A stretch of 64,000 bases of DNA from Podarcis melisellensis (taxonomy: Eukaryota). The position numbers were made by a program, and so were the translations under genes. The notes beneath the pieces were generated by a model, which saw nothing but the letters and a program-made list of their open reading frames with translations, made no database searches and was not told the origin of the DNA. The stretch is taken from the NCBI GenBank assembly GCA_964234715.1, contig OZ174276.1; one strand, given 5' to 3'. Below, piece by piece: positions 158 to 63,924 of this stretch. Each line of letters starts with the position of its first letter. Position 1 is the first letter of the stretch.

Positions 158-3093
158 TTTTTTCCAACATAATTTTTATTGATTTGCATGGATCAAAATA
201 CAAAACTATAATATTCCACTTAATGTTTACATAGTTTACAAAGTGACTTCCTTCAACCTTTCCACAAATCATCCGTGTTAATAAAAGCCAATAGTTCCGC
301 ATTTCTTCTTTTGTAGTGCCGTTGATCATTCTGGTTCCTCTGTTTTCCTTTAGACAGTACCCTATGCTTCTTACAGAGCTCCCTTAAAACCCACTAGTGT
401 TATCTGACCATCGCTTAGATTTTCCAGATATTCCGTAAAACTTTCCCAATCTTTTATAAACCTCTGGTCTTTTATATATCTGATTTTCCCTGTCATCTTA
501 TCCATCTCCACGTAGTCTAATAATTTTGATCTCCATTCCTCTATTGTCGGCAAACCCTCTAATTTCCAGTTTTTGGCTAACAGGACCCTTGCTGCCGTTG
601 TTGCGTACTGGAACAGCTTATAGTCTTTCCTTTTTATCTCCTTTCCTACCAATCCCAGCAGGAATGCCTCGGGTTTTTTAACAAAAGTATAACTTAAGAT
701 TTTCTTTATTTCATTATACACACTCTCCCAAAACCCTTTAACCTTTTGGCATTCCCACCACATATGGTAGAATGTCCCCTCCCTTTCCTTGCACTTCCAG
801 CATTTGTTACAGGATCCGTACATTCTGGCTAGTTTGATGGGAGTCATATACCAGCGGTAAAACATTTTCATTAAATTTTCCTTAAGTGACACACAAGCCA
901 TAAACTTAAGATGTTGTTTCCATAGTTTTTCCCACTCTTCAAAATAGATGTTACGGCCAAAATCTTTGGCCCAGTGTGTCATTACCGACTTAACTTCCTC
1001 GTCAATTAGGTTCCAGTCCAGTAACTGATTGTACATTTTAGACAGAGTTTTTGTATTATTTTCCAGGATCTCAGTTTGGAATCTAGAGTTTTTGTCAACG
1101 TATCCTTTATCTTTGAAATCTTTCCTAAACATATCATTTGTCTGGAAGTAATGGAGCCAATCATAAACTTGGTCTTTGACCTGCTCATACGGCCTCATTT
1201 TCCACTTTCCTTCCTTTTTCATTAACAGTTGTTCGTATGTGGCCCAGTTAGCCCTCATATTGGTCTTTTTAACGGACATAACTTCTAATGGTGACAGCCA
1301 GTGGGGTGTTTTAGGTTCTAGCACGTCTTTGTACCTTTCCCATACCTCAATCAGTGGGCCCCTGAATATGTGGTTTCCGAATTCCTTGTGCGATCTCTTC
1401 CGCCCGTGCCACAGGTAGGCGTGCCACCCGAATCGGTTATCATGACCTTCTAAGTCCAGCACTTCTCTATCCTCCAGATTAATCCATGTCTTTACCCAGC
1501 ATAGGCAAGATGCCTCATAGTATAGTTTCAAATCTGGCAGGGCGAAGCCTCCCCTTTCCTTCACATCTGTCAACAATTTAAATTTTATTCTGGGTTTCTT
1601 CCCCTGCCAGATAAATTTTGAAATCTCCCTATGCCAGACTTTGAATATCCTAGTACCTTTAATCACGGGGATATTTTGGAAAAGAAATAATATTCTTGGA
1701 AGTACGGACATTTTGATTGTGGCTATTCTACCCCAAAATGACAATCTGAGCCTGCCCCACGTTTCTATGTCTTTTTTAATTCCTTTCCATACTGTTTCAT
1801 AGTTGTTTTTAAATAAGTCTATATTTTTTGGCGTTACCCATACTCCTAGGTATTTCACCTTCTTAGTCACCTCTAGTTCCGTTTCTCTTTGTAATTCTTC
1901 AACTTTGTCCTTGTACATGTTCTTAACTATCATTTTTGTTTTCCTTTTGTTAAGTTTAAAACCCGCTATTTTACCAAATTGGTTGAATTCTTCGAGCACC
2001 TCTTTTATTGAGTCTAATGGATCCTCCAATGTTACCACCAGGTCGTCCGCGAAAGCTTTGATTTTATATTCGTTCTGACCTACCCTTACTCCTTTTATTT
2101 TTTTGTTGTCTCTTATAGAATTAAGTAAGACCTCTAACACCATTACAAACAATAAAGGGGACAGTGGGCATCCCTGTCTTGTTCCTTTAGTTACTGTTAT
2201 TTCTTCAGTCTCTACATTGTTTATTATGAGTCTTGCCTTCTGTTCTGTGTAGATGGCTCTTATCCCATTATAAAATTTGGTGCCCACCTCCATATATTCC
2301 AATTGTTTCAGCAGGAAATCCCAGATTACATTATCGAACGCTTTTTTGGCGTCCACAAATAACAACACACCTTGTTTATCGCACTTATCTGTTAAGTATT
2401 CTATGATGTTTATTATGTTTCTTGTGTTGTCTTTCATTTGCCTGCCCGGCAAAAAGCCGGCTTGGTCTTTGTGTATACTTTCTATCAGATTGTCCTTTAA
2501 TCTCTTTGCTAGGATTCCCGCAAAGATCTTGTAGTCTATATTTAGCAGGGAAATCGGTCTATAGTTTTTAATTTGCTGTAAATCTGAGTCTTGTTTGGGA
2601 ATTAATGTGATCAATGCTTCCTTCCACGTCTCTGGTAGTTCTCTTTCTTTGAGGATGTTATTCATTACTTCTTGCAATGGGGTCAGTAGAGCTGGTTCCA
2701 TCTCCTTATAATATCTACCAGTAAACCCATCTGGGCCTGGAGCTTTCCCATTTTTTAAATTTTTAATTGTTGCTTTGATTTCTTCTATCTCAATTAGAGC
2801 GTTTAGCTTCTCTTTTTCTGCTGAGGAGATCTTGTTGATGTTCTTAGCTTTTAAATATCTCTCTATTTTTCTCATGTTATTCCTTTCTGTGTTTTTAAAG
2901 AGTCCTCTGTAAAAATCCAAAAAGGCCTTCCTTATTTCTTTGGGCTTGCTTATCTCTTCTCCTTCCACCTCAATTTTATTTATTGTATTCTGCTCCTTCC
3001 TTTTTTTTAATTGCCAGGCTAATAACTTCCCTGATTTATTAGCGTACTCGAAGTTCCTTTGTCTTAATTTTTTAACTTTGTCTTAATTTTTTA
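158..3093 (-). mobile_element. 5'-truncated L1 LINE (copy A), young
   Basis: 13-bp TSD acaggcttccttt at 145-157 and 3094-3106; AATAAA on minus strand at 175-180 followed by a short A tail; uninterrupted ORF2 remnant. Confidence 0.95.
371..3073 (-). pseudogene. L1 ORF2 remnant: RT plus C-terminal CCHC region, endonuclease domain lost by truncation
   Basis: ORF 371..2968 stays open to the truncation point (KKLRQRNFEYANKSGKLLAWQLKKRK...). Motifs GPDG, RPISLLN, QGCPLSP, FADD, CWKC..HMWWEC. DAKKAFD replaces the DAEKAFD of copy B, plausibly by CpG decay. Confidence 0.93.
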
Positions 3094-7393: not shown

Positions 7394-9224
7394 TTCTGCC
7401 TGGTTTCCAGTTCCTCAGTTCCCTTTATTTCCCCCCCTACACTATGCCAAAATGTATTCAAATATATTTGTGTTTGCTATCACTATCCCATTTTCAGGCC
7501 ATTTTTGCGGGGTGGGTGGTATGGAATAATGTTTTCCCCTTCTGCCGCTGCTGCCACATGTGCACTGGGAGGTAGCAGGGGGTCCATCAAACCCCTTTCC
7601 CCTCCTTGAGCAAGGTATGTGCCTACCATGTATCAGCTGTTCTTGGCCCAGCTAGTTTGCGCACTGCCTACATGCCGTGGGCTTTGTGGTGAGCTTGGCA
7701 TGGATGGGAAGGCAGTGGTGGTGGTAGCAGCAGCTATAGTCATTAGGGTTGATGGAAGTGGGGAGTTGAATTGAGGGGGAAACCCACACGCTTATGTCAA
7801 CTGTCCTGCTTGGCTAAGATGCTCCTGCCTCCTTCTCTTCATGGAAACGAACATGTTTAAAAAGACGGTGGGGAGGCTGATTCAAAGTGTGGTTTGCATT
7901 GCATTGTTATTTTGCTTGCTGTTATGCTATGCATTTTTTTATGTTTTTATATTGTAAACTGCCCTGTGATCCTTGGATCAAGGGCAGTATAGAAATTTAA
8001 TAAATTTAATAAATAAATGACTGAGGTGTCATCTTAGTGAGCTGAGCTGGGGAGCCCAGTAATGCAAGAGCAATGGGCAGAGCGGATTTTGGTCTTTCAA
8101 ATTCCAGCGGCACCCTATGTGAGCCCAAAATTTGGTGCCCTGCTCTCCTCCTCTCGCCTTCCGTTCTGTGCATGTAAAATATCAATAATCCACAAGTTCT
8201 ACCTTTCTTTTTCCAAAAAAAAAAAAAGCTTTAAAGAGAAGAGTAATTTCTCATGATCCAGAAACTCAAGCTGTACTGGTAATAATGTGCTGTTTGCACA
8301 CCACCCCAATGTTTTGTGAGAGAGCGGTATATAAATACTTTGGTAAATAAAAATATATTTATAATGAAATGTTAACATATGACTTTTCAGTTGGAGAAGG
8401 AATTAACACTGAATCATATTTAGCAATGGACACTTGCTTTTTTTCCGAATACTTATTAAAAGAGAAGATTAAAATATGTAATGGTATGCATAAAATTCAT
8501 TTTTTTAAAATTAAAAAATGCCACTGTTATCAACATTATCAGCTGCAGTAGCGCTGTGATAAGCTGAAGTGTAAGTATTTAGCATATTATAATCACGACC
8601 TTTTTGCACATGTTTCATATTTTACAGCAGAACTACGCATTGTACAATTAACAAAAGCCAGAAGGTTGGTCCTCCTATGGAAAAGGTGCTTCTGGAAGGA
8701 GTGATTTGGTGCAAGAAAGAAGCACTCATCCTCTCCGCCCCCCTTCTTGGTGTGTAGACTAAGTGTGGGGTACCCTTGGTCCTCCAGATGCTGCTGAACT
8801 ACAACTCCCAGCAGCCCCAGCAAGCATGGCAACACCTGGAGGGCCAAAGGTTCCCAACACCTGGTGTAGAATGAAGTGATGTTTAACCCAGACTGCCCTC
8901 CCAGCTGTTTGCACCATGTTAGAACTGCATTGGGAGAAGAATTGTGGGAAGTGCAATTTGGAAAGAAGTGATAGTATTTAAAGGCTTAAATACTTTTTCA
9001 GTCCTGTTTTCTGTACCCCTGCTGAAGCTGCTTCCCTCTACGAATAGTAGACTCCTGGATACCCGTTGTGAAGATAAGCCCCGTAACTCTGCTGTAACAT
9101 GAGTTCTGAGGGGACTTATTAACAGTTACATGCAGGGCTTTCTCCCCCCAGCCAGAACTTGCTGGAACTCAGTTCCGGCACCTCTTAGGTGAGCACCATT
9201 GCCATTACAAGAGAACAAGAGAGA

Positions 9225-9466
9225 AAAAGAAGAAGAGTTTGGATTTGATATCCTGCTTTATCACTACCTGAAGGAGTCTCAAAGCGGCTAACATTCTCCT
9301 TTCCCTTCCTCCCCCACAACAAACACTCTGTGAGGCGAGTGGGGCTGAGAGACTTCAGAGAAGTATGACTAGTCCAAGGTCACCCAGCAGCCACATGTGG
9401 AGGAGTGGGGACAAGCACCCAGTTCCCCAGATTACGAGACTACCGCTCTTAACCACTACATCACAC
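9225..9466 (-). mobile_element. tRNA-derived SINE with (CTT)n tail (Squam3-like), inserted in a short MITE at about 9133-9515
   Basis: Reverse complement of the family at 57919: gtgatgtagtggttaagagc head with A box, gatatcaaatccaaactcttc tail. Confidence 0.8.
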
Positions 9467-10803
9467 AGAGGTGTTCATGGTGAGTTCCAGACCTCTTTCT
9501 CTAGAAAAATGACACATGCTCATATGTGCAACAAGAGATTGAGGAGGGGCCACATCCCAGGCATCTCCGAGGAGAGCCAGCGCTAGTCAGCAAAGACAAT
9601 ACCTCAGTAGATGAGCCAGCTTTCAAAGCAATTAGTCAACTGCAAGTTAAAGGCGTAGCCACCCGGTGTTCTTTAATGTGGTTGAATGAGTCTATTCCTG
9701 AATTATTTAGATTAACTAAATGTAAAAATCAAGTTCCACACAAGCCATTGGGTCACAGAAAAGAAATGCGCCAAAGGGACTGAATTCAGAGCCACACTCC
9801 TTCTCTCTCCTCTGCATTTGAAATGGAATAGTCTCCGGATAACAACCGGAGAGGTTCAGTTCGGTGCAATTCAGGCACATCCTTTCACCTCTCTCTTAAG
9901 GACTCCAAAGTTAAGAGCTAGTTGATGCAGTACATCTGTTGCTGCAGCCTCCCACGTGCAACTGACTCAGGTCTGTGGGGAAGGATCCCCTCAAGGCTTC
10001 TCTCAGCCGTTCCTGCCACAGTTGTGACTTTGACATCCCCCCCCCCCGCACTGTTCCTTGTTTGAAAATCCTTCATGTCTGCTATGGAAAGTTTGCATTG
10101 TGGCTGGGAGTTTGTTGGTTTTTCTTTGGGTGGCGGAGACCTGCAGGCTGTTCTCATTACTTTTTTATTAGCCAATTTGAATACTCATTTAGCCCCACCA
10201 AGCGTGCTGTGGGTTTTAAATTCTTCCTTTGGAGGTGTTTGCGAAGAGTCTGCCCTTGTCGCTCCATGGAAGAGGCCCCATGCAACGTGACTGAAGGTCT
10301 TGCCATGATGCAAGAATTCATGCTGGAACAAAACTGAGAGGGGAAATCGGCATAAGGGTCTGCAGCAAATTTAAGGGGCTTTGTGGACAAAACAGGGAAG
10401 GGAAGCTTTGCTGATTAGTGCAAGAGTGGAAGTAGATCCTGATCAGAAATGAATGGAAGGACCTAAAATCAGATATTGCAAGGGATATGTGTCCCTGTAA
10501 ACATATATCTTCCTATGTGTTTCTCTAAAAATGTCTTAGCAAAACAAACACATACCACGACGTCACCACACATAGCAATTTTTACTCCCAGCTCAGTTTC
10601 ACTGGCTAATGCTTGGAGGGGACAGAGAACTGCTAAACATGATGCTGATACATGGGAGATGTGGGAGCCCTAATGTATAATGAGGCCCTCAGTCACAAGG
10701 CACCAGTTAGTAAACATGGGGGAAATACAGGCACATTTATCACAAAAACACTGTCTAGCTGTTGGTTATTGTGTGGGCTAAAGCAGCCTGTGCATCTGGA
10801 ATA

Positions 10804-11045
10804 CAGTGGTACCTTGGGTTACAAACTCCTTGGGTTACAAACACTTCGGGTTACAGACTCCACTAACCCAGAAGTAGTACCTCGGGTTAAGAACTTTACC
10901 CCAGGATGAGAACAGAAATTGTGTGGCGGCGGCGCAGCGGCATTGGGTGGCCCCATTAGCTAAAGTGGTACCTCAGGTTAAGAACAGTTTCAGGTTAAGA
11001 ACGGACCTCCGGAACAAATTAAGTTAGTAACCAAAGGTACCACTG
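10804..11045. mobile_element. Tc1/mariner (pogo/Tigger-like) MITE
   Basis: TIRs cagtggtacctt...aaggtaccactg flanked by TA dinucleotide TSDs; second copy at 40871. Confidence 0.9.
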
Positions 11046-12679
11046 TACAGGGATTGCAACATATCTGATCTCCTAATGAAACTAGTACATTTCAGTGGGG
11101 AGAATTCTGATTTTAGAAAGATATGTGGTGGCTTTTTGGGACAGAGGATAATTTTGTTCCTTCTGCATTTTTAAGCAAACTGATCCAATTTGCGTGCTCC
11201 CAGACTAATGCACAGATTGGATTGTGTACTTCTCCAAATTTTACAATACAGTTCTTGGTTCCAAAATCCTACCAAAATGATTTAAAATGTGCCACAGGTC
11301 CCCTCATATCTCTCCATTACATATCTTGTTGGAAAGGTTGTAGAATGGAATGACTAAGCCTTTTCAGGTGCAAGTGTTACACTGACACATAGGCCAACCC
11401 TAAAAGCTGGTGTGGCCAAAGTAGAAGAGTATTGTTCTCAGTACTGTATTCCTATGCAAACAGTCAGCAAAATTACTTTAAACCACGAAAGAACAAGAAA
11501 ATGAGCACATTTGAAGGGAGTGGGGGGTTCCAAAAACCCTTTTGGAACTGCAATATTACAGCTGGATACTCACGAGAGCAGCCAGTAACTAACACACAAA
11601 CCATGAACACACAAGCTTCTGGCATCAAAGTATCACAGCAGGGAAGCTATGCGAGCAGTCAGAAATTTGTGTTATATATATATATGGATATGGTTATATG
11701 GGAGTGGGTGGGCTTGGAGGCTATAAAAATCCTTTTAGCATCATGACATCACATTGAGGGGCCATAAGAGCGGTCAATAAAAATAAAATAAACACACACA
11801 CAGAGACAAATAGGTTTAATAAGAATTTTAAAACTACTGCTGGTATTGACAAAACTATGTGACTGTGCAATATTAGCTGATTACCAGTAGCTGAATTCCA
11901 GATTGGCTGACCTCCAGATAAGATATAGCCAACTTAACACAATCCGATAGGTAAACAAACTCTGATCTGCATGCTAATCTGGACAGCTCAGATTAAGGCA
12001 CTTCAAATACAAATTTGCAAAGATTTAATTCCCCAAGCATTCAAAATTCTCTCTAATAAAAAACAAAAACAAACCCTGACGATTTGCCCATCCGAGTAAC
12101 TCACCAGAAGGACTAATGAACAACAAAGGGGATGTAGATAAAGAGGAATATAAAAGGCAACTGTGAAGATCCACTGATTTTGAGTTTATTCCCCCATGGA
12201 GCCTGAAGTATTTAAGGAACCCCTTCTGCAGGATAGCCCCACAGCAATCCTCTGGATAGGGGTCAAGGCACATCCAATGCTGTAAGTTATTCTGTGGTCT
12301 CTCAGTATTTTATTTCCTTGGGGTAGCAGTCTAACTGCTTTCAGGCTAGCTGAGCTGACTCTGTCCCTTTCCCTCTCCACAAATGCACACACACACATGC
12401 ACACACACAGAGAAAATTACTCCAATCCGTCCTCAAGTATATTGGTTGCTATTGTACACTCATTTACCAATGAAATGCCTGACTATAGACTAATGCTTTA
12501 GCCTGCGGTCTAGGTAAGAGCTCGTTTATTTGTTGGGCCCTTCAAAGATAAGATGATGTTGTATTTGTACATTCTTTCAGCGCTCACATTAGAGGCAGGT
12601 TAACAAGCATTTGCCCATTTTGCCAGGTTCAAAGAAGGGAGACAGCAGGACATTGCAGCAGACAAAGGATACAGGTCCC

Positions 12680-14193
12680 GACTTCCGGTCCAGCGCGACA
12701 CCGACTCAGGCGGGGATTTCTCCACTGCGGAGAATCCCGAGCTTCTCGGAGGAAAAAGGGGCTCCGCAGGGCGCAGCGGTCCCCTGAAAAGTATCTGGAG
12801 GGTGTGCAGATACACTGGTTCCCGTGGAGCCGTAACGCGGACCTCCCGGACGTCAGGTAACTCCGTTTTTTCGGAGCGAAGAGTACGACGGGGGGAGAAA
12901 CGGGCTGAGGGAAGCCATAGCTCCCTTCGAGAAAGCGAAGCCCCGAGCCTGAAGGGGAAGCGCCGGATTCTCAGAAAAAACAAATTCGAGCTCAAAAAGG
13001 AGGTTATAACTCAGAGTGGTTATTAAAGAATTCGAACAAAAAGGAGGTCAAAAAGAGAGCTCAACCTCTATCTGAAATCATGGCGGACGCAGAGATCTAG
13101 GCAAAGCAGCGAAAAACGTGAGTGTCGCTAGCGGTCGAACTTTTCTCTCCTTGGAAACTTTCCGGAGCATTTGAAACAAAGTAACTGATAAAAGAGGAAA
13201 GTAGAGGAGAGCAACAAGTTACTATATTGCGATCAGCCTGTATATGTTTCGGATCTCCCCAGCCCCCTTACATCGGGAGGCAAGGGAAAGCTGTTAGTTT
13301 CACTTTTAAAAGCTCTGCGCAACGAAAGAACTTATCGGGCTAGAGACTCCATTGTTCCTTTTCGATGGCTGCGTGCCAGGAGGAAGAAGGAGGAGAAAGG
13401 GACTGTCCGTTTGGTTCGGCATTACTACTTAAACTAAACTTAAATAATAACTTTAACTTTTCGAAATAACCCGGCCATCAGCGCAAAAGAGACTTTATTG
13501 TGAACTTAACGGGAAGTGGGGAAGCCTCTTGGTACCTACTTCTCTGTCTCTTCTTTCTTGCATATATTTTTACCATCGGTTTTTTTTTCTTTTTTTCCCT
13601 TCGTCTGGACTCTACCCTCCGATTGCAACCTCCTGGTGGTTGGAAGGAAAATTACAACCTGGTTCTTCTTCTTCTTCTTCTTTTTTTTTTTTTGCTCTTT
13701 TTCTGACTTCTCTGGGAGAACTAATTTCTGAGGTGGGATCTCTATTTGTCGGGAAGAAGTTTAATTGGGACTTATTCTATTGGCGCCCAACCCCCGGAAT
13801 ACTCCATTTACCCAAACTTTTATGGGAATTAGCCCGATTGAGGGCAGGAAGACAAAGAAGGAAGAAATTCTTAAGAGGGTGGCCCCTTAATATATGAAAT
13901 GGATTAGCCTGATTGGTGGCAGGAAGACTCAAGATCAAGTATTGACTGGACTGATACCCTGGACTTTGGACTTAGAAGCTGATAACTAATAACTCTAATC
14001 TGTGGATTAGCCCAAGTGGGGGCAAGAAGAAGGGTCACCGATTGGGGAGACTGACTACTGGTTATAAGCACAATAGGGCCAAAAACAGACTTAAAAGTAC
14101 AACAGACTATAGAATTTAAGGGGCATTGGGGATTGTATTAGGGGGGACTAATTTGACTCTTTGGCAGAAAGGGGGATAAATAAATTGGGCGAA
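12680..14193 (+). promoter_or_regulatory. L1 5'UTR and internal Pol II promoter
   Basis: CpG-dense first ~450 bp; starts GACTTCCGG (ETS motif CCGGAAGT on the minus strand); YY1-like aatcATGGCGG at 13076-13086; (TTC)n/T tract near 13660-13700. Confidence 0.75.
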
Positions 14194-15186
14194 ATGTCGC
14201 ATACACAGAAAAAAAGTGGTGAAGGGGGGACTCCGGGGGAAAGAAAGGGATCCAAACAAGAATCAGATTTTAAAGCGGAAATATTGAAAATGTTTAGTGA
14301 AATTAGGCAGACTGAAAAGAACCTAGAAACAAAAATAGAACAATTAGATACAAAGATTGGCAAAATGGATAAGAAAATAGACGAGACGGTAAATGAATTG
14401 AAAGGACAAATCAAAGAAATATCCAAGAGAACCCATGTGTTAGAGGAGGGAATGAAAAAGACAAAATTGGAAATGAGAGAATTGAAACGGGAAGAGGATA
14501 AAATCAGGGTGGGTCTCATGGAATTCAATAAATCACAAGAAGAAATGTGGGATGCCATCTCCATGAATGAACTTCGACAACGGGAAGTTAATTTAAGGAT
14601 GAGAGGGATACCTGAAATCCACAATGAGAATATTAAACAAAGATTAACAAGAGAACTGGCACAATGGTTGGAACTCCAAGAGGTGGAAGTGGCAAATTCG
14701 ATCCAGAACGCCTTCAGGATGAAGGTAAGAACGACCAAAGCGAAGAAATATCCCGGGGACTGCTTGATAACATTTAAGGATAGAGATATGAGAAACTTGG
14801 TTCTACAAAAAAATAGGGAAAAAAGATTGTCCATAGATGGTTTTTACATAATTATTTTTAAAGACATCCCAATTAAATTGTTGAAACGAAGAGACCCCTA
14901 CAAACCACTGGTACAAATTCTTAAAAAGAACAACATAGAATTCAGATGGGAGTTCCCGGAGGGGATCTCCTTTACCTACAAGAACAAAAGGCACCGACTA
15001 TGCAGCCCAGCGGAGATAGGCAAGTTCCAAAGAAAGTATAAAGAATTAACGGTAGAAGAAGAAGACGAAATGAAAGGAGCAACCGGAGGTACCGCCGCAA
15101 AGATGAAGAATGGAGAGCAACGGGACGAGGAGGGGGAGGAGGAAGTGGAGGAAGAAGAAGAGCAAGAAGAGGAGGAAAGATTATAA
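14194..15186 (+). CDS. L1 ORF1p (coiled coil, RRM, CTD nucleic-acid chaperone), 330 aa from the first ATG
   Basis: Heptad-rich coiled coil, NLRMRGIPE at the RRM start, FRWEFPEGISF in the CTD; lies directly upstream of ORF2. The ORF track starts at an upstream TTG (14161). Confidence 0.92.
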   Translation: MSHTQKKSGEGGTPGERKGSKQESDFKAEILKMFSEIRQTEKNLETKIEQLDTKIGKMDKKIDETVNELKGQIKEISKRTHVLEEGMKKTKLEMRELKREEDKIRVGLMEFNKSQEEMWDAISMNELRQREVNLRMRGIPEIHNENIKQRLTRELAQWLELQEVEVANSIQNAFRMKVRTTKAKKYPGDCLITFKDRDMRNLVLQKNREKRLSIDGFYIIIFKDIPIKLLKRRDPYKPLVQILKKNNIEFRWEFPEGISFTYKNKRHRLCSPAEIGKFQRKYKELTVEEEDEMKGATGGTAAKMKNGEQRDEEGEEEVEEEEEQEEEERL

Positions 15187-15231
15187 AACTTAGGAAAACT
15201 TATTATTTAAATTAATTAATTTGGAAAAAAT

Positions 15232-18200
15232 ATGGCATTAAACATATGGAATTGGAATGTGAATGGACTGAATGAAAAAAAGAAACGGAATAAGGTGGAA
15301 CATCTTTTAAAGAAGAAGAATTTAGACATAATATGTTTACAGGAGACACATATAGCAAAGAAACACAGAAAGATTTTGATCAATAAGAGACTCGGAAACG
15401 AATTTATATCATCAGATAGGGAGAAGAAGAGGGGAGTGATACTGTATGTAAGGAGTAAAATCGAAGCACAACAAATTTTTAAAGACGAAGAAGGAAGACT
15501 TATTGCAGTCCAAATTAATTGGCAAGGTGAGAAAATAATGATTGTCGGGATCTACGCACCTAACGGAAATAAAACTGATTTTTATAAGAATTTGGAAGAA
15601 AAACTGTTGGAATACGCAGACCAGAAGATAATTGTAATGGGAGATATGAACGGAGTGGTGTCAGGAGAGATGGACAGATTGAGAAACAATGGTTCAAAGG
15701 AAGGAAAACTACCCAAAACTTTCTTTGAAATGGTCAAAAATTGTAATCTAATAGATATCTGGAGGTTGCGGCACCCACTGGAGAAACAGTTCACTTTTTA
15801 TTCGGAACCAAATCAGTCAATGTCCAGAATCGACCAAATTTGGATATCAAATGAATTAACGCCAAGAATCCTAGAAGTAGAAATACAACCGAGAGTTATC
15901 TCAGATCATAGCCCCATTAAATTAGAAATTAAAGGATTTGAAGAAAGAACCTATAGATGGAGACTAAATGATTACTTATTGGACGATCGAAAGGTAGTGC
16001 AAGATGCACAGAAGAAATTGAAAGAATACTTTGAAGACAACTGTAATAAAGGAACGAGGATGAACATAGTGTGGGACGCAAGCAAGGCAGTGATGAGAGG
16101 CTTCTTTATACAGCAAAATTCGATTAAGAAGAAAAATCGGGAGAAGGAAAAGAAAGAAATTTTAAAACAAATTATGGAAAATGAACAAAAATTAATCAAG
16201 AACCCAAACAGTGAAAAAATCAAGCAAAGCATCAAGGCTTTACAAACCCAGTTTGCAATGATGATTAATAAGGAGGTGGAATGGAACATTAAAAAACTGA
16301 GACAAAAAAACTTCGAATTCACAAACAAATCAGGAAAATGGCTTGCCTGGCAGATCAAGAAAAGGAAGGAACAAAACACAATAAACAAAATTGAAGTGGG
16401 AGGAACAGAGATAACTAACCCCAAAGATATCAGGAAAGGATTCTTGGAATATTATAGACAACTATATAAAAAGAAAGATAAGAACAATATGAGGAAAATA
16501 GAAAGATATTTAAAAGAGAAAGAGGTGCAAAAGATCCCGACAGAAGCACAAGAAAGGCTGAACACCCCGATTGACACAGAGGAAATAAGAACGATGATAA
16601 AAAAACTGAAAAATGGAAAGGCCCCAGGACCAGACGGCCTTAGTGCAAGATATTACAAAGAATTGGGAATATCCCTGTTGATACCACTGAAAGAAGTAAT
16701 GAACAACATATTGAAGGAAAGAGAAATCCCAGAGACATGGAAGGAGGCACTTATAACTTTTATCCCAAAAGAAGATGTGGACTTATCCCAAGTAAAGAAT
16801 TATAGACCAATTTCATTACTCAACACGGATTACAAAATTTTTACGGGAATTATAGCAGAAAGATTAAAAAAGGTTCTACAAGAAATTATCCATGATGATC
16901 AAGCGGGTTTCCTTCCAAATAGACAGATGAGAGATAATGTGAGAAATGTAATAAATATCCTAGAATATCTATCTGCAAGGAATGAGAAACAAGCAATGTT
17001 GATGTTCGTGGATGCTGAAAAAGCATTTGATAATGTGGCGTGGGATTTCATGTTGAAAAACATCGAGCAGAGAGAAATGGGAAATGACTTTTTTAACGGA
17101 ATAAAAGCAATATACACGGAGCAAAAAGCGAAGCTGCTAGTGAACAACATGATAACAGAGGAGATAAAGATCTCTAAAGGTACTAGACAGGGATGCCCGT
17201 TGTCACCATTATTGTTTGTGCTGGTCCTGGAGGTGCTATTGGACTCAATAAGGAAAAAGGAAAGTATAAAGGGGGTGACAATAGGCCGAAACCAATACAA
17301 AATTAAAGCCTTTGCTGACGACATAGTTTTGATGGCGGAAGACCCGTTGGAGACTGCAGCGGAGATATTGGAAGAAATTGAAAAATTTGGGGAGGTGGCA
17401 GGTTTTATAATAAACAGGAAAAAAACCAAAATTATAGCTAAAAATATGGAAAAAATAACAATGGAGGCATTGCAGCAACAAACAGGTATTGAAATTGTTA
17501 AAAAAGTTAAATACTTGGGAATATGGCTATCCCCAAAAAACATCGATCTGTTCCAAAACAATTATACCCCGGTGTGGAACGGAATTAAGAAGGACCTGGA
17601 AGTGTGGAATAGGCTAAAGTTATCTCTCTGGGGGAGAATCTCTATGATCAAGATGTCAGTGCTGCCAAAGATGCTGTTTTTATTCCAGATGTTACCAATA
17701 CTAAAAGGAGTGGCGATTTTTAAGGAATGGCAAAGGACGATTTCCAGATACATATGGCAGGGCAAAAAGCCGAGAATCAAGTATAAATTACTGACAGATG
17801 CAAAGGAAAGGGGAGGCTTTGCCCTGCCGGATCTGAAGCTATACTACGAAGCATCGTGCCTTTGCTGGTTAAAAGAATGGATTAAACTTAAAAATACAAA
17901 ACTCTTGGATTTGGAAGGATTTGACAACAGATTTGGATGGCACGCATACCTTTGGAAAGAAAAGAAGAAGGGATACAAAACTTTTGAAAATCACATCTTC
18001 CGGAAATCGCTATGGGAAGTTTGGGACAGATATAAAAACATATTGGAAGGGGGGGTGCCACATTGGCTATCACCACTAGAGGTTATGGGGGTCAAAAAAG
18101 TTAATATGAGAAGCGATTGGATTACCTATGGAGACTTAGTAGAGAAAGAAGGAGGAAAGTGGAGATTAAAACCATATGAACAAGTCAAAGAGCATGTTTT

Positions 18201-18993
18201 TGATTGGCTGCACTACCATCAAATAAATGAAATGTTCAAAAGGGATGTGAAAGAAAAGGGGTATAAAGAAAAAGATTCGAGATACCAAACAGAGATAGTG
18301 AACAGCGACTCCAAAACAATTTCCAAAATGTACAAAATCTTGCTGGAATGGCACACAATAGATGAGGAAGTGAAAGTAGTAATGATTCAGTGGGCCAAAG
18401 ATTTAGGATACAATATAGACTTCGACGACTGGCAGAAAATATGGAATGAGAATTTGAAATTTACGGCATGTACCACACTAAAAGAAAATGTAATGAAGAT
18501 GGTTTACAGGTGGTACATGACACCAGCAAAATTGGCAAAAATGTATAAAACCTGTAACAAATGCTGGAGGTGTAAGGAGAAGGAGGGTACGTTCATACAT
18601 ATGTGGTGGGACTGTAAAAAAGTAAGGGGGTTCTGGGAAGCTATATACAACGAACTAAAGAAAATACTAAAATACAGTTTTGCTAAAAAACCAGAAACCT
18701 TCCTTCTAGGCATAACAAGAACGGATATAAGTAGGAGAGATCTTAAACTGTTTCAATATGCTACTGTCGCAGCAAGGACACTGCTAGCACAAAGGTGGAA
18801 ACAAGAAACGGTTCCGACTTTAGAGGAATGGAGGTCAAAACTAATAGATTACGCAGAGTTAGACAAATTAACGGGGAAAATTAGATACAAAAAGGACCAG
18901 AATTTTATTGAGGACTGGGGGAAATTTACAGAGTATTTGGAAAGTATATGTGAGGATAGTACAACGCTAGCGTGTTTTAAAGAGGCTTTGTGA
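15232..18993 (+). CDS. L1 ORF2p: APE endonuclease, reverse transcriptase, CCHC domain (1253 aa)
   Basis: EN motifs NWNVNGL, LQETH, GDMN, SRID, SDH; RT motifs GPDG, RPISLLN, DAEKAFD, QGCPLSP, FADD, KYLG; CWRC..HMWWDC. Confidence 0.97.
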   Translation: MALNIWNWNVNGLNEKKKRNKVEHLLKKKNLDIICLQETHIAKKHRKILINKRLGNEFISSDREKKRGVILYVRSKIEAQQIFKDEEGRLIAVQINWQGEKIMIVGIYAPNGNKTDFYKNLEEKLLEYADQKIIVMGDMNGVVSGEMDRLRNNGSKEGKLPKTFFEMVKNCNLIDIWRLRHPLEKQFTFYSEPNQSMSRIDQIWISNELTPRILEVEIQPRVISDHSPIKLEIKGFEERTYRWRLNDYLLDDRKVVQDAQKKLKEYFEDNCNKGTRMNIVWDASKAVMRGFFIQQNSIKKKNREKEKKEILKQIMENEQKLIKNPNSEKIKQSIKALQTQFAMMINKEVEWNIKKLRQKNFEFTNKSGKWLAWQIKKRKEQNTINKIEVGGTEITNPKDIRKGFLEYYRQLYKKKDKNNMRKIERYLKEKEVQKIPTEAQERLNTPIDTEEIRTMIKKLKNGKAPGPDGLSARYYKELGISLLIPLKEVMNNILKEREIPETWKEALITFIPKEDVDLSQVKNYRPISLLNTDYKIFTGIIAERLKKVLQEIIHDDQAGFLPNRQMRDNVRNVINILEYLSARNEKQAMLMFVDAEKAFDNVAWDFMLKNIEQREMGNDFFNGIKAIYTEQKAKLLVNNMITEEIKISKGTRQGCPLSPLLFVLVLEVLLDSIRKKESIKGVTIGRNQYKIKAFADDIVLMAEDPLETAAEILEEIEKFGEVAGFIINRKKTKIIAKNMEKITMEALQQQTGIEIVKKVKYLGIWLSPKNIDLFQNNYTPVWNGIKKDLEVWNRLKLSLWGRISMIKMSVLPKMLFLFQMLPILKGVAIFKEWQRTISRYIWQGKKPRIKYKLLTDAKERGGFALPDLKLYYEASCLCWLKEWIKLKNTKLLDLEGFDNRFGWHAYLWKEKKKGYKTFENHIFRKSLWEVWDRYKNILEGGVPHWLSPLEVMGVKKVNMRSDWITYGDLVEKEGGKWRLKPYEQVKEHVFDWLHYHQINEMFKRDVKEKGYKEKDSRYQTEIVNSDSKTISKMYKILLEWHTIDEEVKVVMIQWAKDLGYNIDFDDWQKIWNENLKFTACTTLKENVMKMVYRWYMTPAKLAKMYKTCNKCWRCKEKEGTFIHMWWDCKKVRGFWEAIYNELKKILKYSFAKKPETFLLGITRTDISRRDLKLFQYATVAARTLLAQRWKQETVPTLEEWRSKLIDYAELDKLTGKIRYKKDQNFIEDWGKFTEYLESICEDSTTLACFKEAL

Positions 18994-19400
18994 AAGTAGA
19001 AGGAGTATTGTCAAAAGGCAAGCAAAGATAGAAACATAATACTTAATGGCAATATAAAATTAAGGAATGTGAAGAGAGGATTGGAAATACGAAAGATTGT
19101 CAGAAAGGTTGGGGGAGGTCCAAGTAAGGCTAAATATGTGATATATAAATGGATTTGTTTATTGCTTTTTATGGAAAACTTTAATAAAATTTATATATAT
19201 AAAAGGATACAGGTCCCACAGTCTCTTATAGCAGGAAGGGCACTCATTTTGTAAACTTTCAGCCGGGCTGTGTGTAGCAAGGAATAGGCAGACTCTCTAG
19301 ATAACTCCAAGTTGAAGTTTCTATTTGTCTTCAGAGCCTCCATGGTTCCCACTAACAGCCATGTTAGAACTAAGTGTGTCATTTGCCCACCTATAAAGCA

Positions 19401-19747
19401 GGGAGGCGGGTGGCGCTGTGGGTTAAACCACAGAGCCTAGGACTTGCTGATCAGAAGGTCGGCGGTTCGAATCCCCACGATGGGGTGAGATCCCATTGTT
19501 CAGTCCCATCTCCTGCCCACCTAGCAGTTTGAAAGCACGTCAAAGTCCAATTAGATAAATGGGTACTGCTCCGGCGGGAAGGTAAACTGTTTCCATGCGC
19601 TGCTCTGGTTTGCCATGCTGGCCACATGACCTGGAAGCTGTGTGCGGACAAATGCCGGCTCCCTCGGCCTATAGAGCGAGATGAGTGCGCAACCCCAGAG
19701 GTGTCCGCGACTGGACCTAATGGTTGGGGTGCCTATACCTTTACTTT
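19401..19747 (+). mobile_element. Sauria SINE
   Basis: gggaggcgggtggcgctgtgggttaaacc head, B box ggttcgaatccc, acctttacttt tail; TSD taaagcaggga at 19394-19404 (overlapping the head) and 19748-19758. Confidence 0.92.
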
Positions 19748-22700
19748 TAAAGCAGGGATAAGAACACACAAAGCCTGTTTATTTTTAATGGAGAATCAGC
19801 CTTATATAACCAACATTCTTAAATCTAATTAATGCATGAAGGGGTTAAGACCATAGAGTAAGCTGTCCTCTAAGGCTTAGTTAGGAAGAGGTATCAAGAT
19901 TTGTTCTTCACATTCCACCATGTGGACCCTACCAAGAAGGAGGTCTGGGCTGGTTGCTCCAAGCCCAAACCATGTGGCTTAAGCAAGCCATCCTTGTGTT
20001 TCTATACAAATAATTTAGAAACATCTACCACTTTGGAACCTTAGTTATACTGCCTGTGTTCTTACTGCTGTATGGTAAAGCACATGAATCTGACTTTTGA
20101 AGAGTTTGTAAGTAAACCATTTTTAACTTACCAAATGTGTGGTCTATTTCTACGCTTAGAGAAGTGGGGAACTTTGGAAGTAACTTAGAAGGGGATGTTT
20201 TAAAGGTCTAACAGCCTATATTTCCACACTTTTTCCTTTAAACAAGTTCAAAAAACCAACAATTTTCACAACATTGTGGTAAGGGGAGCCTGTGTGCTCT
20301 TATCCCAACTTTTATCATTATTATTAAAAGCACATTTATTCAAAAGTTCACCTTTGTCCACTGCCATAATACCACAGAACGACCACTCCAATCCTCAATC
20401 CCTCATCCCTCTCAATGTTGGCTCATCAAATACCCTCAATAGGAACCAAAGTACACAACCAAATTGAACAATTTCTACATAAATCATTCTAAGATCTAAA
20501 ATACACACACACATACATACAAATATATGGCTTTGCTTAGAGTTCCTCTGGTGTTTAACCTGGGGAGAAACCTCCAACTGTGCTTTAGGTATCACTTCAG
20601 GCAAAAATTTGGTGAAAGAAAGTTCACCTGGTCAGAGCAATTATTTCCTTGACTTAGCCACTTGATAGATCACCTGAACCAGCTATATGAGACAGCAAAG
20701 AATATCATGACTCCTTTGTCTTCCCCAGCTCGAAAAGAAAAGTCAGAAGTAATTGTGGGGTCACTTTATAAATCTAGGGCTTATCAGATTTATCCCAATT
20801 GTTAAAGGGAGAGAAAAAATAAGAAGGGCTACTGGAATGATTTCTGCTATTTTGCATTTCAGCAGAACAGAACAAGATGGGGTGCTTCCCCCCTTTTTTT
20901 AGGTAGCTACTCATATGAGGACATTTACAATGTTTTTTTAAAGTCTCTGTCATTTCTGGAAACAGTTCTCCATAAGACGCTCTTGAGTCTAGTCTGAGTA
21001 TAATTTAGATTTGAATGTCTCCTGGCAGATTTGTGGCACACATAAGAACATCAGAAGTGGCTGCTGGAACAGGTAAACAATCCATCTAGTTCCACATCCT
21101 GGTCAACCAGATACACGTAGGAAACCGGCAAGTAAGACCTATCATTAATCCCACCAGTAGTACTTATACCTTAGTGGTGAACAGGCAGATGGGAGGAAAG
21201 AATTACATTCTATGGAGGTGAGTGCCAGTGGACAATTGCACGACTCATAGCCCCTTATAGTCCCACAATGAGAGCTACTGGCCACATTCTGACTATAATG
21301 TGGCATGTGTTTGACTGCTTGGCAAAAGAAGACAGGGATAGTCTGGCAGCAGGACTGAGAATGACTTGCTTTTGTTTGTGTTTGTTTGTTTTCCCCCTCA
21401 TATCAAGAGTGTATTGTTCCCCAGAGGCACTTCCTAGCCTTTGAGAAGGCCTGAACTAAGTGCCTTTGGGGCCTTGATTAAGTATTTATCTGCATTCCCA
21501 AAACATGGTGTCATCACAATTAAGGCCACGAGAAAGCAGCCAATTTGGGGCATGTACCAGGAGCAGAGATTGCTGGCTGTGTGTACGGAAGGGAGCAAAG
21601 GGCCTGTTATTGAGCCCTGTGGGACTTTAACCATCCACCCTTCCAGAACATGCTTCAGAATCCAATCAACATTTGCTCTCCTTTAAGTGGTTTACAGCTA
21701 TCTGTAAGCAGCGTGTGTGCTGATGCCTGTTAATTAATATACCGGAGTCAACAGAAGCACATGCTGCATTGCAATTGAGCAAGATGGCAGGCTGAAGGAC
21801 TCCTGCCTTGAGTAGCGAAGACAGTGTGTGTGATGGTGCCGTCGGGCAGGAGCTCTAGGAGCCCAGTTTGAAAAGAGGAGGGAAGGAGGAATGAAAAGGG
21901 CTGAAGCTTACCTGAAAGCTAGCATTGCCTGCCTGCGGTTGAGAAATATGAACTGCATGTAATCATATCTTGACTTAGAAAGCTGGGATGTGGATAGGAT
22001 TTTGGCTGCACATTTAGCTCTTTTGCTCCCTTCCTTTGCGTGAGTGGCTGTGTGAGCAAGCAAACAAAGCAGGAAGTTTTCTACTAGTGATAGTTTACTG
22101 TTTCATCCATACCGGAAAAATATGGTTGGAAGCAAGCCAGGATATTAAACCGTGGGTTTGAAATTGATACCATGCTCCATTTTTCATTCAAAATGGCTGC
22201 TAGGCTATAACAACTCTAAGTATGAAGTCATAAGAGAAAAGCATCAATAAACCTCACTAGGAATCAAAGCTTAAGAGGAATAAAAGATGCAATGCAATTA
22301 TCTTTAAAAAAAACCACCACCCTATAGTTTTTAAAAGAAAACTTTTTACAACACATATGGAGATTATACACTTAAGAACTGTTCAAGGAAGTGTCATAGT
22401 TTATGATGTTTATGCAGATGTTCACTCTCCAGGTGGGCTGGGAAAGACTCCTGTATGAACCCCGGAGAGTCATTGCTAGCCCAATGATCTAACTTGTTAA
22501 GGCAGCTTCATAAGTTCATGCCGCACACTCCATCCCAGACTCCCCGCCATGCTGATCATCTGCCTAACAACAGAACTAGTGCACATTTTGGAGACTGGAT
22601 TGTGAGGTTCCTCCTTTTGCAATGGATGCCTCAAAGAAAATGCGGCCTGCTGTGCTCCTGATTTTGTGCTCCAGTTGCTGAAATGGGACTGTTGGCACTT

Positions 22701-25454: not shown

Positions 25455-25815
25455 TTATTTGTAATTTTCATTTATATACATTACAACAATAATTCAACTA
25501 TAATTCTAACATTTCGAACCTTGACTTCCTTTCCTCTCTTTCTGTGGTTCCTTGCATTTATTTTCATCATTTCCTGCATACTTTAAATTATCTTAACTTT
25601 TTCTTTTATTCATCTATGTCTCATATATGTTTTTTTTTGAAACTGCAGGTTTTTACAGTGCTCCTGCCAATGTCTTGATCTGTTTGCAATTTGAAGATAT
25701 TCAATAAACCATTTCCATTCCTTTCTAAGAAGGTTGTTGTTTTGATTTCTTATTCCTCTGGTAAGTTTCGCCATTTCTGCATATTCCATTAATTTCTGTA
25801 GCCATTCTTCTCTGC
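25417..25815 (-). mobile_element. L1 3' fragment (copy C) with (TA)n tail
   Basis: 12-bp TSD cctctggagtag at 25405-25416 and 25816-25827; encodes EEWLQKLMEYAEMAKLT..EWKWFIEYL, like the ORF2 C-terminus; AATAAA at 25454-25459 (minus). Confidence 0.88.
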
Positions 25816-41606: not shown

Positions 41607-42096
41607 AGAGTGATAAAGAGTAGAAGAGTGATAAAGTTCCCACAAGGAAAGAATGGATCTCAAAACTAGTGGAATATGCGGAGTTAGACAGCTTGTCTGA
41701 GAAAATAAAGAATAAACCAAAACAGGCATTTATTTCAAAGTGGGAAGTCTTTAAAATATACTTGAAAAATATTTAAAGTTTAAACTCTGTCACAGCATTT
41801 GAATAACTTCAGTAGTAGTTATAAGTATGTAGTTAGGGATAAGGTAGTTTAACCATATTTAAATTTTGACAAGAATGTATTATGTAATGTCAGTAAATTA
41901 AGGAAGAAAAAATGAAGTATGGAGTGGACAGGAAGTCGGGTCTACAGTAACAAGACCATTTTTATTTTATTCTTTTGTGAACAATATTGAGTCTAGTTGT
42001 TGTTCTTTCTTTCTTTCTTTCTTTGTTTTGTGTCATTGTATGTGGATAATTGTACTTTTTGTTGAATAAAGTGAAAACAACAATCATAAAAAAGAT
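41607..42096 (+). mobile_element. L1 3' fragment (copy G)
   Basis: 12-bp TSD agtatgaagtag at 41595-41606 and 42097-42108; encodes VPTRKEWISKLVEYAELD..KWEVFKIYL; AATAAA at 42065. Confidence 0.85.
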
Positions 42097-52920: not shown

Positions 52921-53172
52921 TTTTAAAAATATATATTTTATTAAATTTTCTGTTTTACAATTTCAAATAAACATTTTGCATACTTAAGATATTAATGACT
53001 TCCCTTCTTCTCTTTCCATGGTTCATTTTACATATATCCCTGCATATTTACAAAAAGTATACCAATCAGTTTTCCATTATTGCATCCATCAAAACTTAGT
53101 TACACTGTTGAATTTATATTAATGCTGCCAGAGTTTTCAGCTGTACACAATTATTTTCCATATATTCAATAA
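52921..53172 (-). mobile_element. L1 3' fragment (copy D)
   Basis: 7-bp TSD actcctt at 52914-52920 and 53173-53179; FIEYMENNC ORF2 end; AATAAA at 52937-52942 (minus). Confidence 0.75.
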
Positions 53173-61231: not shown

Positions 61232-62213
61232 TTATTATTTTAAAAAATATTTTTATTGAATTTTTAATCTTTAACAAATTTACATCTTATAATCTAACCA
61301 CAGAGTATATTCCCTACCCCCACCCCACCCCACCCCACAACTTCCCCTAACTTCCCTTTCTGGTTTGTAACATATTAACTTGTAATGCCTGTTATCTTTC
61401 CTAAATATAATAATCTTTAAATTAACCTTCTATAGTTATCTTGTTAATTGTAAGCATTTTTAGTCAAACCCTGCAAGTGAGTCCATTTCCTTACATTGTT
61501 TCTGTAGGTACAACATAAAAGATTCCCAATCTTTATAAAAATCTCTGTGTTCCTTGTCCTTAAATCTTTCAATTAGCTTCACCATTTCAGCGTATTCCAT
61601 CAGTTTTTCTTCCCATTGTTCCTTTGTTGGTATTTCGTCAGCTGCATTCTAGCTGCTGTTGTGGCATACATAAATAGTTTCTTCTTTACTTCTGGCAAAT
61701 CTTGACCTAAAATGTCTAGCAAAAACGCTTCTGGTCTCTTAGCAAAAGTTATCTTAAACATCCTTTTCATTTCATTATAAATCATTTCCCAATAGTTTTT
61801 AATTATTCTGCAATTCCACCACATGTGAAAAAATGTACCTTCCGTTTCTTTACATTTCCAGCACTTATTAGAGCTTGTTCTATACATTTTTGCATGTGTA
61901 ATATACCATCAATATATTTTCATATAATTCTCTTTTAACAATATACAATCAGTAAACTTTAAATTATTTTTCCATAATTTCCCCCACTCTTCCATTTGTA
62001 TATTATGTCCTATATCTTGTGCCCATTTAGTCATTTCAGATTTGACCTCTTCATCTTTAGTCTCCCATTCTAAAAATAAATTATACATTTTCTTTAAAAG
62101 TTTGTTATTGTCATCTACAATTTCTCTTTGGAATCTGGATATGGTATAACCGAATCCTTTCTTATTATCTTCTTTAAAGACGTCATTTAACTGCTGATGT
62201 TGCAGCCAGTCAT
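61232..62213 (-). mobile_element. L1 3' fragment (copy F), frameshifted
   Basis: ORF 61600..61887 has CWKC..HMWWNC and PEAFLL; TSD aagggagaatta / aaggaagaatta at 61220-61231 and 62214-62225; AATAAA at 61252-61257 (minus). Confidence 0.9.
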
Positions 62214-63323: not shown

Positions 63324-63924
63324 CCCAAAGATTAAGGCCTACTGGGAAATGATCTATAATGAAATTAAGAAAGTCCTTAAGTGGACATTTGTAAAGAAAC
63401 CAGAGGCTTTTCTCTTGGGCATGGTCGGCCAATTGGTACCAAAGAAGGATAGAACATTTTTTATGTATGCAACCACAGCAGCAAGAATCCTGTTGGCAAA
63501 GTATTGGAAGATGCAAGAACTACCTACTCTGGAAGAATGGCAGACGAAGGTGACTGAATTTATGGGACTGGCAGAGATGACCGGCAGAATCCGTGACCAG
63601 AGGAAAGAGACAGTGGAGGAGGATTGGGGAAAATTTAAAGTATATCTTAAAACTGTTGTAAAATTATGGACTGATAAGATGTGAAGGGGTAAGAAACAGA
63701 GAATTACAGCTGTAAATGATAAGGTTAAGAAAATCTAAAGAGAGTTAATTAGAATTGATTGATGGGTTGCTAAAAAATGGAAAAACAAGGATGCAGTGAA
63801 AGGGAGGTATGGGGAAGTCAAATTTTATTTGTATGTATTTGTTTTTTTGAAGTGTGTTTGTTTTCTTTTTTGTTTTGTCTGTTGTATATTTTGAAAACCA
63901 TTAAAAATCATTTAAAAATAAAAA
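63324..63924 (+). mobile_element. L1 3' fragment (copy E)
   Basis: ORF 63349..63684 is the ORF2 C-terminus (KKPEAFLLG, YATTAAR, PTLEEW); 11-bp TSD ataaaaaacag at 63313-63323 and 63925-63935; ATTAAA at 63900. Confidence 0.92.

Follow-up and report, generated by a model that had tools for sequence, protein, structure and literature searches.

Complementary words at the two ends of a lizard L1 retrotransposon: a conserved start word and a 3' purine box that may serve as separate signals

A full-length L1 retrotransposon, here called copy B, has been found in a 64,000-nt stretch of contig OZ174276.1 of the lacertid lizard Podarcis melisellensis (the window, whose positions serve as coordinates unless another locus is named). 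The first bases of its RNA are complementary to a motif in its 3' untranslated region (3'UTR). The question raised by this locus is whether the two ends of the RNA are joined by base pairing, as an earlier note on this DNA had proposed, or whether two words with other tasks happen to match. The complementarity of the ends is real, and the evidence leans to a coincidence of an ETS promoter word and a 3'UTR purine tract over circularisation. We regard it as rather probable that each word is a cis-signal of its own in lizard clade-1-type L1, one an ETS/GABP-type start word, the other a 3'UTR purine box acting at the RNA level, with the complementarity needed by neither.

By its sequence features copy B is assigned to the vertebrate L1 elements of the lizard clade-1 type; these features are (i) a second open reading frame (ORF2) with an APE-type endonuclease and a reverse transcriptase, (ii) the marks of target-primed reverse transcription and (iii) a long 5'UTR starting with GACTTCCGG. 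Pfam analysis of ORF2 returned PF03372 (1.7e-18) for the endonuclease and PF00078 (3.5e-42) for the reverse transcriptase, and the nearest proteins are those of Podarcis muralis, with an identity of up to 88% over 84% of the query, together with Anolis L1 ORF2. The ORF1 product has no Pfam match of its own and shares 59-71% identity with Podarcis proteins listed in UniRef as L1 RRM-domain proteins. The hallmarks of target-primed reverse transcription are a 16-bp target-site duplication, an AATAAA signal and a TA-rich tail. The element begins exactly where the earlier note had placed it, with GACTTCCGGTCCAGC directly behind the duplicated AAAGGATACAGGTCCC, and its end has been corrected from 19203 to 19201. 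Nine contigs from three sequencing runs under two species labels (5, 3 and 1 contigs) break exactly at 12680 into unrelated A-rich flanks, so many insertions of the family of copy B share that first base. The coordinates of all features are collected in Table 1.

The site itself may also occur empty: flank contigs from the runs X4 (same species label), X5 and X8 (other organisms) show no differences in 12560-12679 and then continue into non-L1 sequence. This suggests that the insertion is absent at that site in these three runs; it may be recent or polymorphic.

The first 9 nt of copy B, GACTTCCGG, form a conserved L1 start word. The same 9 nt open a second full-length L1 at position 8113 of a Podarcis muralis locus (L003, 8098-15073), which starts GACTTCCGGGACGCC, is flanked by the duplication AAAAATGGAAGCAAG and carries GGAAGTC in its 3'UTR. 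Full-length lacertid families compared here are these two, the family of copy B and L003; five Logan contigs with ORF1 (L004, L005, L006, L007 and L010) start inside the 5'UTR and contribute no 5' ends. Between L003 and copy B, ORF1 is 42% and ORF2 54% identical, and the 5'UTRs do not align by blastn. The identity of the 5' word in two families so far apart speaks for a signal in its own right. On the minus strand the start word reads CCGGAAGTC, which we take to be an ETS/GABP-type core. The CCGGAAGT core, as CTTCCGG, lies within the first 10 nt of copy B, of L003, of an older P. lilfordi copy (L008, reading GGCTTCCGG at the homologous position), of an L1 from the wrasse Xyrichtys (L011) and of the published anole and zebrafish consensus sequences. 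The start words of anole clade 2 (GGGNGCTGCGCATGC) and of the frog were not found in any locus searched.

The GACTTCCGG start is an already published L1 5' terminus, read there as a transcription-factor site: the anole clade-1 consensus starts GACTTCCGGTGN8ATGGCG (GACTTCCGGTG...) and the zebrafish consensus GGACTTCCGGTT, the latter having been matched to the XrpFI factor site (Boissinot and Sookdeo 2016, PMC5381506). The same survey likens both conserved starts to the YY1-containing conserved start of mammalian L1 and does not connect the start word with the 3'UTR (PMC5381506). Copy B shares with anole clade 1 the identical first 9 nt at the very first base and a long CpG-rich 5'UTR; it differs in having TCCAGCGCG after the start word, without the ATGGCG box, and in its lacertid host. 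In mammalian L1, the YY1 box at the start belongs to an internal promoter and positions the start site (Athanikar 2004, as cited in PMC5381506). The lizard word resembles this box as a putative factor site within the transcript's first ~20 nt that has stayed the same while the remaining 5'UTR changed, and differs from it in the factor class, its putative core being of the ETS/GABP type. In ribosomal-protein promoters, GABP sites upstream and YY1 sites downstream of the start site recur together. By this comparison the range of the published anole start word now includes the lacertids, and that of its CTTCCGG core a wrasse L1; this wide spread supports an ancient ETS/GABP-type internal promoter.

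Two further occurrences of similar words have been seen in other contexts. A repeat family at window positions 11004 and 41057 and at 20036 of the P. lilfordi locus L009 reads ...GTTAAGAA(C/T)GGACCTCCGGAAC(A/G)AATTAAGT..., one change from the L1 start (GACCTCCGG), in a context unrelated to L1. In a Varanus komodoensis locus (L001, 4600-4900), two repeats GGTGGTCTTCCGG(G/A)TGGCGGCAGC stand ~246 bp apart upstream of a broken L1 ORF2; in these, an ETS-type core is followed directly by the YY1-like ATGGCGGC, an arrangement that recalls the anole L1 start consensus.

The 3'UTR of copy B spans ~210 nt and includes GTTGGGGGAGGTC at 19108-19120, in agreement with the earlier note. Beside copy B, the window holds five L1 3' ends identified by tblastn with ORF2 and one fragment consisting of 3'UTR only (G). 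All 7 window 3'UTRs have the same construction: an A-rich and then G-rich purine run ending in a heptamer, located 50-145 nt before AATAAA. The heptamer is GGAAGTC in copies A, C, D, F and G, as had been reported for five of the six other copies, and GGAAGTT in copy E. Six further 3' ends, from P. muralis, P. raffonei and P. lilfordi loci and a Logan contig, read GGAAGTC (three), GGAGGTC (two, both from P. raffonei) and GGAAGTT (one). The heptamer GGARGTY is present in 13 of 13 lacertid L1 3'UTRs, at a chance expectation of ~0.06 per UTR, and these copies span families with ORF2 C-termini ~30-65% identical, some sharing as little as 30-50%; natural copies have been compared throughout, with no family consensus used. 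The five variant boxes, among them the GGAGGTC of the intact copy B, come from at least three lineages, and each keeps G-U pairing with the 5' word, so that the G-U compatibility pointed out earlier for GGAGGTC and GGAAGTT holds for every variant in the 13 3'UTRs. Directly upstream of the heptamer, 12 of the 13 copies have purines.

A purine-rich, G-containing tract is conserved across all these families (13/13). Mammalian L1 also carries a G-rich polypurine tract in its 3'UTR (Howell and Usdin 1997, as cited in PMC5381506). The two are alike as purine-rich, G-containing 3'UTR tracts kept across families and differ in that the lizard box is short (~20 nt) and closes with the fixed heptamer GGARGTY. 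According to the main vertebrate L1 survey (PMC5381506), the 3'UTRs of non-mammalian L1 are mostly without a G-rich tract, and the heptamer box is not mentioned in its 3'UTR section. The fixed heptamer box of lacertid L1 3'UTRs appears undescribed and seems to be a genuinely new item. Whichever machinery deals with the 3' end of these L1 RNAs, which are weakly polyadenylated, the box is a candidate for the element it recognises.

When 12 of the 3'UTRs were folded locally, neither a common hairpin nor a consistently accessible box emerged; the box is no more accessible than the rest of the 3'UTR. Other readings of the box have been rejected: for a G-quadruplex, four G-runs were seen by eye in some copies and not in others, and none of the splice-donor, nuclear-receptor half-site and microRNA-seed motifs fits the heptamer in every copy. 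Two Varanus L1 3'UTRs (L001) have a purine run without GGAAGTC; these copies are 5'-truncated, with no target-site duplication found, and the missing box cannot be matched to a 5' end. In fragment E, in contrast to the other copies, the box is doubled (GGAAGTT twice), and at window 61300-61338 (minus strand) a (GGGGT)n run follows that could clearly form G-quadruplexes. At ~2273-2330 of L003, a very short 3'UTR without the purine box comes after an L1-like ORF2 C-terminus (39% identity to copy A), and this element may belong to a different L1 clade with short UTRs.

How far do the two words pair? For the 5' end of copy B and GTTGGGGGAGGTC, RNAduplex returned the duplex drawn in the earlier note, that is 7 bp, a GG bulge and 6 bp, with three G-U pairs (-15.6 kcal/mol). 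Common to the families is only the 7-bp core, which contains one G-U pair in copy B and consists of 7 Watson-Crick pairs in L003. In the purines upstream of the heptamer, G8 and G9 of the 5' word find no partners, and the helix stops at 7 bp; the second helix of L003 is a different one, of 4 bp. When 5' ends were tested crosswise against the boxes, the cognate box ranked 4th of 13 for copy B and ~7th of 13 for L003, several non-cognate boxes pairing equally well or better, which points to the second helix as a composition effect of a G-rich run against a C-rich leader, not co-adaptation. The 13-bp two-helix model proposed at first is not supported, its second helix being not family-specific and cognate pairs being no better than others.

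The comparison with shuffled sequences, also proposed at first, has two sides. The duplex beats mononucleotide-shuffled 3'UTRs (p = 0.019 for copy B, 0.028 for L003), but sites inside copy B do as well or better. Among the partners of the first 15 nt the 3'UTR site comes 6th, five internal sites ranging from -20.6 to -16.6 kcal/mol against -16.4 kcal/mol; an equal or better site occurs in 17% of the 210-nt windows of copy B, and its sense strand contains ten GGRRGTY sites. As the 5' word is invariant in the copies compared, the 3' variants are one-sided and the flanking pairs are not family-specific, there is no covariation to read, and the wobble-compatible 3' variants lend weak support to pairing.

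The wrasse L1 shows the start word in a different setting. It has a clean 16-bp duplication, starts AGGCTTCCGGG and ends in a 100-nt T-rich 3'UTR, in which no complement of the start word has been found (best duplex -6.1 kcal/mol, worse than 95% of shuffles). The 5' word is here kept without a 3' partner; it is older than the box and retained without it, which fits a promoter role, with pairing not needed.

Two separate signals would account for these observations as follows. At +1, GACTTCCGG would be the start-site word of an internal promoter, with a putative ETS/GABP-type site (CCGGAAGTC) on the other strand, and would play the part of the YY1 box in mammalian L1; because it lies inside the transcript, it would be copied into every full-length daughter. 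The 3' box, with its A-rich run, G-rich purine run and GGARGTY end, would act at the RNA level, most likely as a protein-binding element, the candidate partners being an export factor, a stability factor or the element's own reverse-transcription machinery. It would correspond in the lizard to the polypurine tract of the mammalian L1 3'UTR. A 5' pyrimidine word and a 3' purine word will then pair on paper. We infer the factor at the 5' word and every function of the 3' box from the motifs; both words exist and are conserved, and both ends of the element have been positioned.

The strongest rival is a minimal cyclisation of the RNA. It states that GACUUCC at the capped 5' end pairs with GGARGUY of the 3'UTR (7 bp, ~-9 kcal/mol), joining the ends of the 6.5-kb RNA of lacertid clade-1-type L1. 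Possible benefits are a preference for full-length templates, better translation or help in the 5' joining step of insertion. The 5' word would be fixed as a promoter word too, so that the 3' box could drift via G-U-compatible changes only, and the promoter word would double as a cyclisation arm. We consider this unlikely, though several observations favour it and weigh against two unrelated signals. Box positions 1, 2, 3, 5 and 6 are invariant (n=13), which for 1, 2, 3 and 5 is not predicted by a plain purine-tract constraint, and the sole variants in the 13 3'UTRs, A4 to G (3 copies) and C7 to T (2 copies), are wobble-compatible. The two heptamers, each conserved on its own, match as exact reverse complements in both of the divergent full-length families (copy B family and L003). 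We estimate the chance of such a match at ~1 in 500 with the box regarded as a purine tract's end and at 1 in 16000 with free heptamers, not yet allowing for post-hoc choice. Furthermore, the duplex exceeds that of shuffled 3'UTRs; a cofold of the two UTRs alone gives the 7-bp helix a probability of 0.6-0.99; and the full-length minimum free energy (MFE) fold of L003 closes on this helix, structure predictions at 6.5 kb being unreliable. Two separate signals also call for a protein partner of the box, which is so far a proposed one. The GGAGGTC of the intact, apparently recent copy B and of two P. raffonei copies is not an ETS core; lacking GGAA, it points to a constraint at the RNA level and not simply to an ETS site in DNA.

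Set against cyclisation are the length of the helix, 7 bp only, with purines opposite G8 and G9 blocking its extension, and a second helix that is not family-specific. The RNA of copy B holds ten equivalent and five stronger internal partner sites, and in its full-length (6.5 kb) MFE fold the 5' end is paired with 15258-15345. The local accessibility of the box is no better than average, the invariant 5' word leaves no covariation, two Varanus 3'UTRs are without the box, and the fish L1 retains the CTTCCGG start core without any 3' partner, so the two words do not always co-occur. The 5' word is, moreover, the deeply conserved start of anole clade 1 and zebrafish L1 that has been read as a transcription-factor site. 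Long RNAs with ends joined by terminal complementarity are known from the flavivirus 5'CS/3'CS and from the influenza and bunyavirus panhandles. The viral helices are longer or accompanied by extra elements, covary and are needed by the polymerase, whereas the lizard L1 offers 7 bp and no covariation. Such panhandles act as RIG-I ligands (PMC7827607). The nearest precedent is another retrotransposon, Ty1, whose CYC5/CYC3 cyclisation words are backed by genetics and by selective 2'-hydroxyl acylation analysed by primer extension (SHAPE) (PMC7969010, PMC3592414). The likeness consists of short complementary words near both ends of a retrotransposon RNA; Ty1 differs as a long terminal repeat element copied inside particles from a transfer RNA primer, and its CYC5 adjoins the primer-binding site, whereas the lizard L1 word is at the capped end. 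No description of base-paired 5'-3' ends in L1 or any long interspersed element (LINE) was found in the literature searched. If true, cyclisation would be the first such base-paired element described for a LINE. It would also give L1 a means in cis of choosing full-length templates or of linking the 5' end with the place where reverse transcription occurs; for the question of full-length against truncated copies there is no such cis answer in mammals.

Both words might instead be putative ETS-family DNA sites in opposite orientation, their complementarity following from the preference of one protein, and the 3' site would serve as an enhancer or antisense start site or cooperate with the 5' site via a dimeric factor, e.g. 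the GABP tetramer. GGAAGT is an ETS core plus flank, 10 of the 13 boxes keep GGAA, the box context of copy D, ACAGGAAGT, is presumably a textbook ETS1/ERG-type site, and, read from its bottom strand, the box resembles GACTTCC, with which the element itself begins. This reading is nevertheless very unlikely, as three of the 13 boxes, including that of the intact copy B, read GGAGGTC without a GGAA/T core, the base after GGAAGT is C or T and not the usual G or A, and no CC precedes the box core, unlike the 5' site. Pure coincidence in copy B, with the 13-bp duplex as a chance match of a C-rich leader and a G-rich tract and no conserved feature behind it, draws on the 6th rank of the claimed site, on the 17% of windows that do as well and on cross-pairs as strong as cognate pairs. 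It is improbable to a like degree: at both ends, different families and species share the 7-mer core, so it is no private accident of copy B. Coincidence of this kind is contradicted for the 7-bp core and stands solely for the second helix. Two separate signals, the reading preferred here, keep both heptamers as conserved features and leave the second helix to composition.

Table 1. Positions of copy B, its parts and the 3'UTR boxes of the other L1 copies in the window
Feature	Position	Strand	Remark
Full-length L1, copy B	12680..19201	+	Flanked by target-site duplication; ORF1 and ORF2 with endonuclease and reverse-transcriptase domains
Target-site duplication AAAGGATACAGGTCCC, 16 bp, 5' copy	12664..12679	.	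Identical 16-mer at 19202-19217
Target-site duplication AAAGGATACAGGTCCC, 3' copy	19202..19217	.	Perfect match to 5' copy
5'-terminal 15-mer GACTTCCGGTCCAGC of copy B	12680..12694	+	Directly after target-site duplication
5'UTR of copy B	12680-14193	+	1.5 kb, CpG-rich
ORF1 of copy B, 330 aa from first ATG	14194..15186	+	Homologues named L1 RRM-domain proteins
ORF2 of copy B, 1253 aa	15232..18993	+	Endonuclease plus reverse transcriptase
3'UTR purine box AGAAAGGTTGGGGGAGGTC of copy B	19102..19120	+	Ends in heptamer GGAGGTC (19114-19120)
AATAAA poly(A) signal of copy B	19183..19188	+	Short TA-rich tail comes after
GGAAGTC box, 5'-truncated copy A (ORF2 374-3076, minus)	245..251	-	
GGAAGTC box, L1 3' fragment C	25523..25529	-	
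GGAAGTC box, L1 3' fragment D	41931..41937	+	
GGAAGTC box, L1-type 3'UTR fragment G, no ORF2 remnant detected	52997..53003	-	
GGAAGTT box, L1 3' fragment E	61339..61345	-	Second GGAAGTT at 61349-61355
GGAAGTC box, L1 3' fragment F	63813..63819	+	

Among the comparison loci, L003 is nested in the 3' part of the ORF2 of an older L1, whose frame is split by the insertion and which has its own GGAAGTC box downstream. The ORF1 gene of a Podarcis raffonei locus (L002) has been rejected as a canonical L1, since it is preceded by DNA other than a 5'UTR and has an inverted ORF1 copy beside it. This intact ORF1-only gene (7787-11032) is annotated as glutamic acid-rich protein-like; the inverted copy is located 1.4 kb upstream, is 81% similar and has no L1 5'UTR in between; rearrangement or co-option of an ORF1 may explain the gene. 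The P. lilfordi locus L009 was also set aside for the comparison, being rearranged. About 190 bp past copy B, at window 19390-19480, lies the head of a tRNA-like short interspersed element (GGGTGGCGCTGTGGGTTAAACC...GGTTCGAATCCCC), and within L003, near 16400-16700, an L1 3'UTR is interrupted by a member of the same family in reverse-complement orientation.

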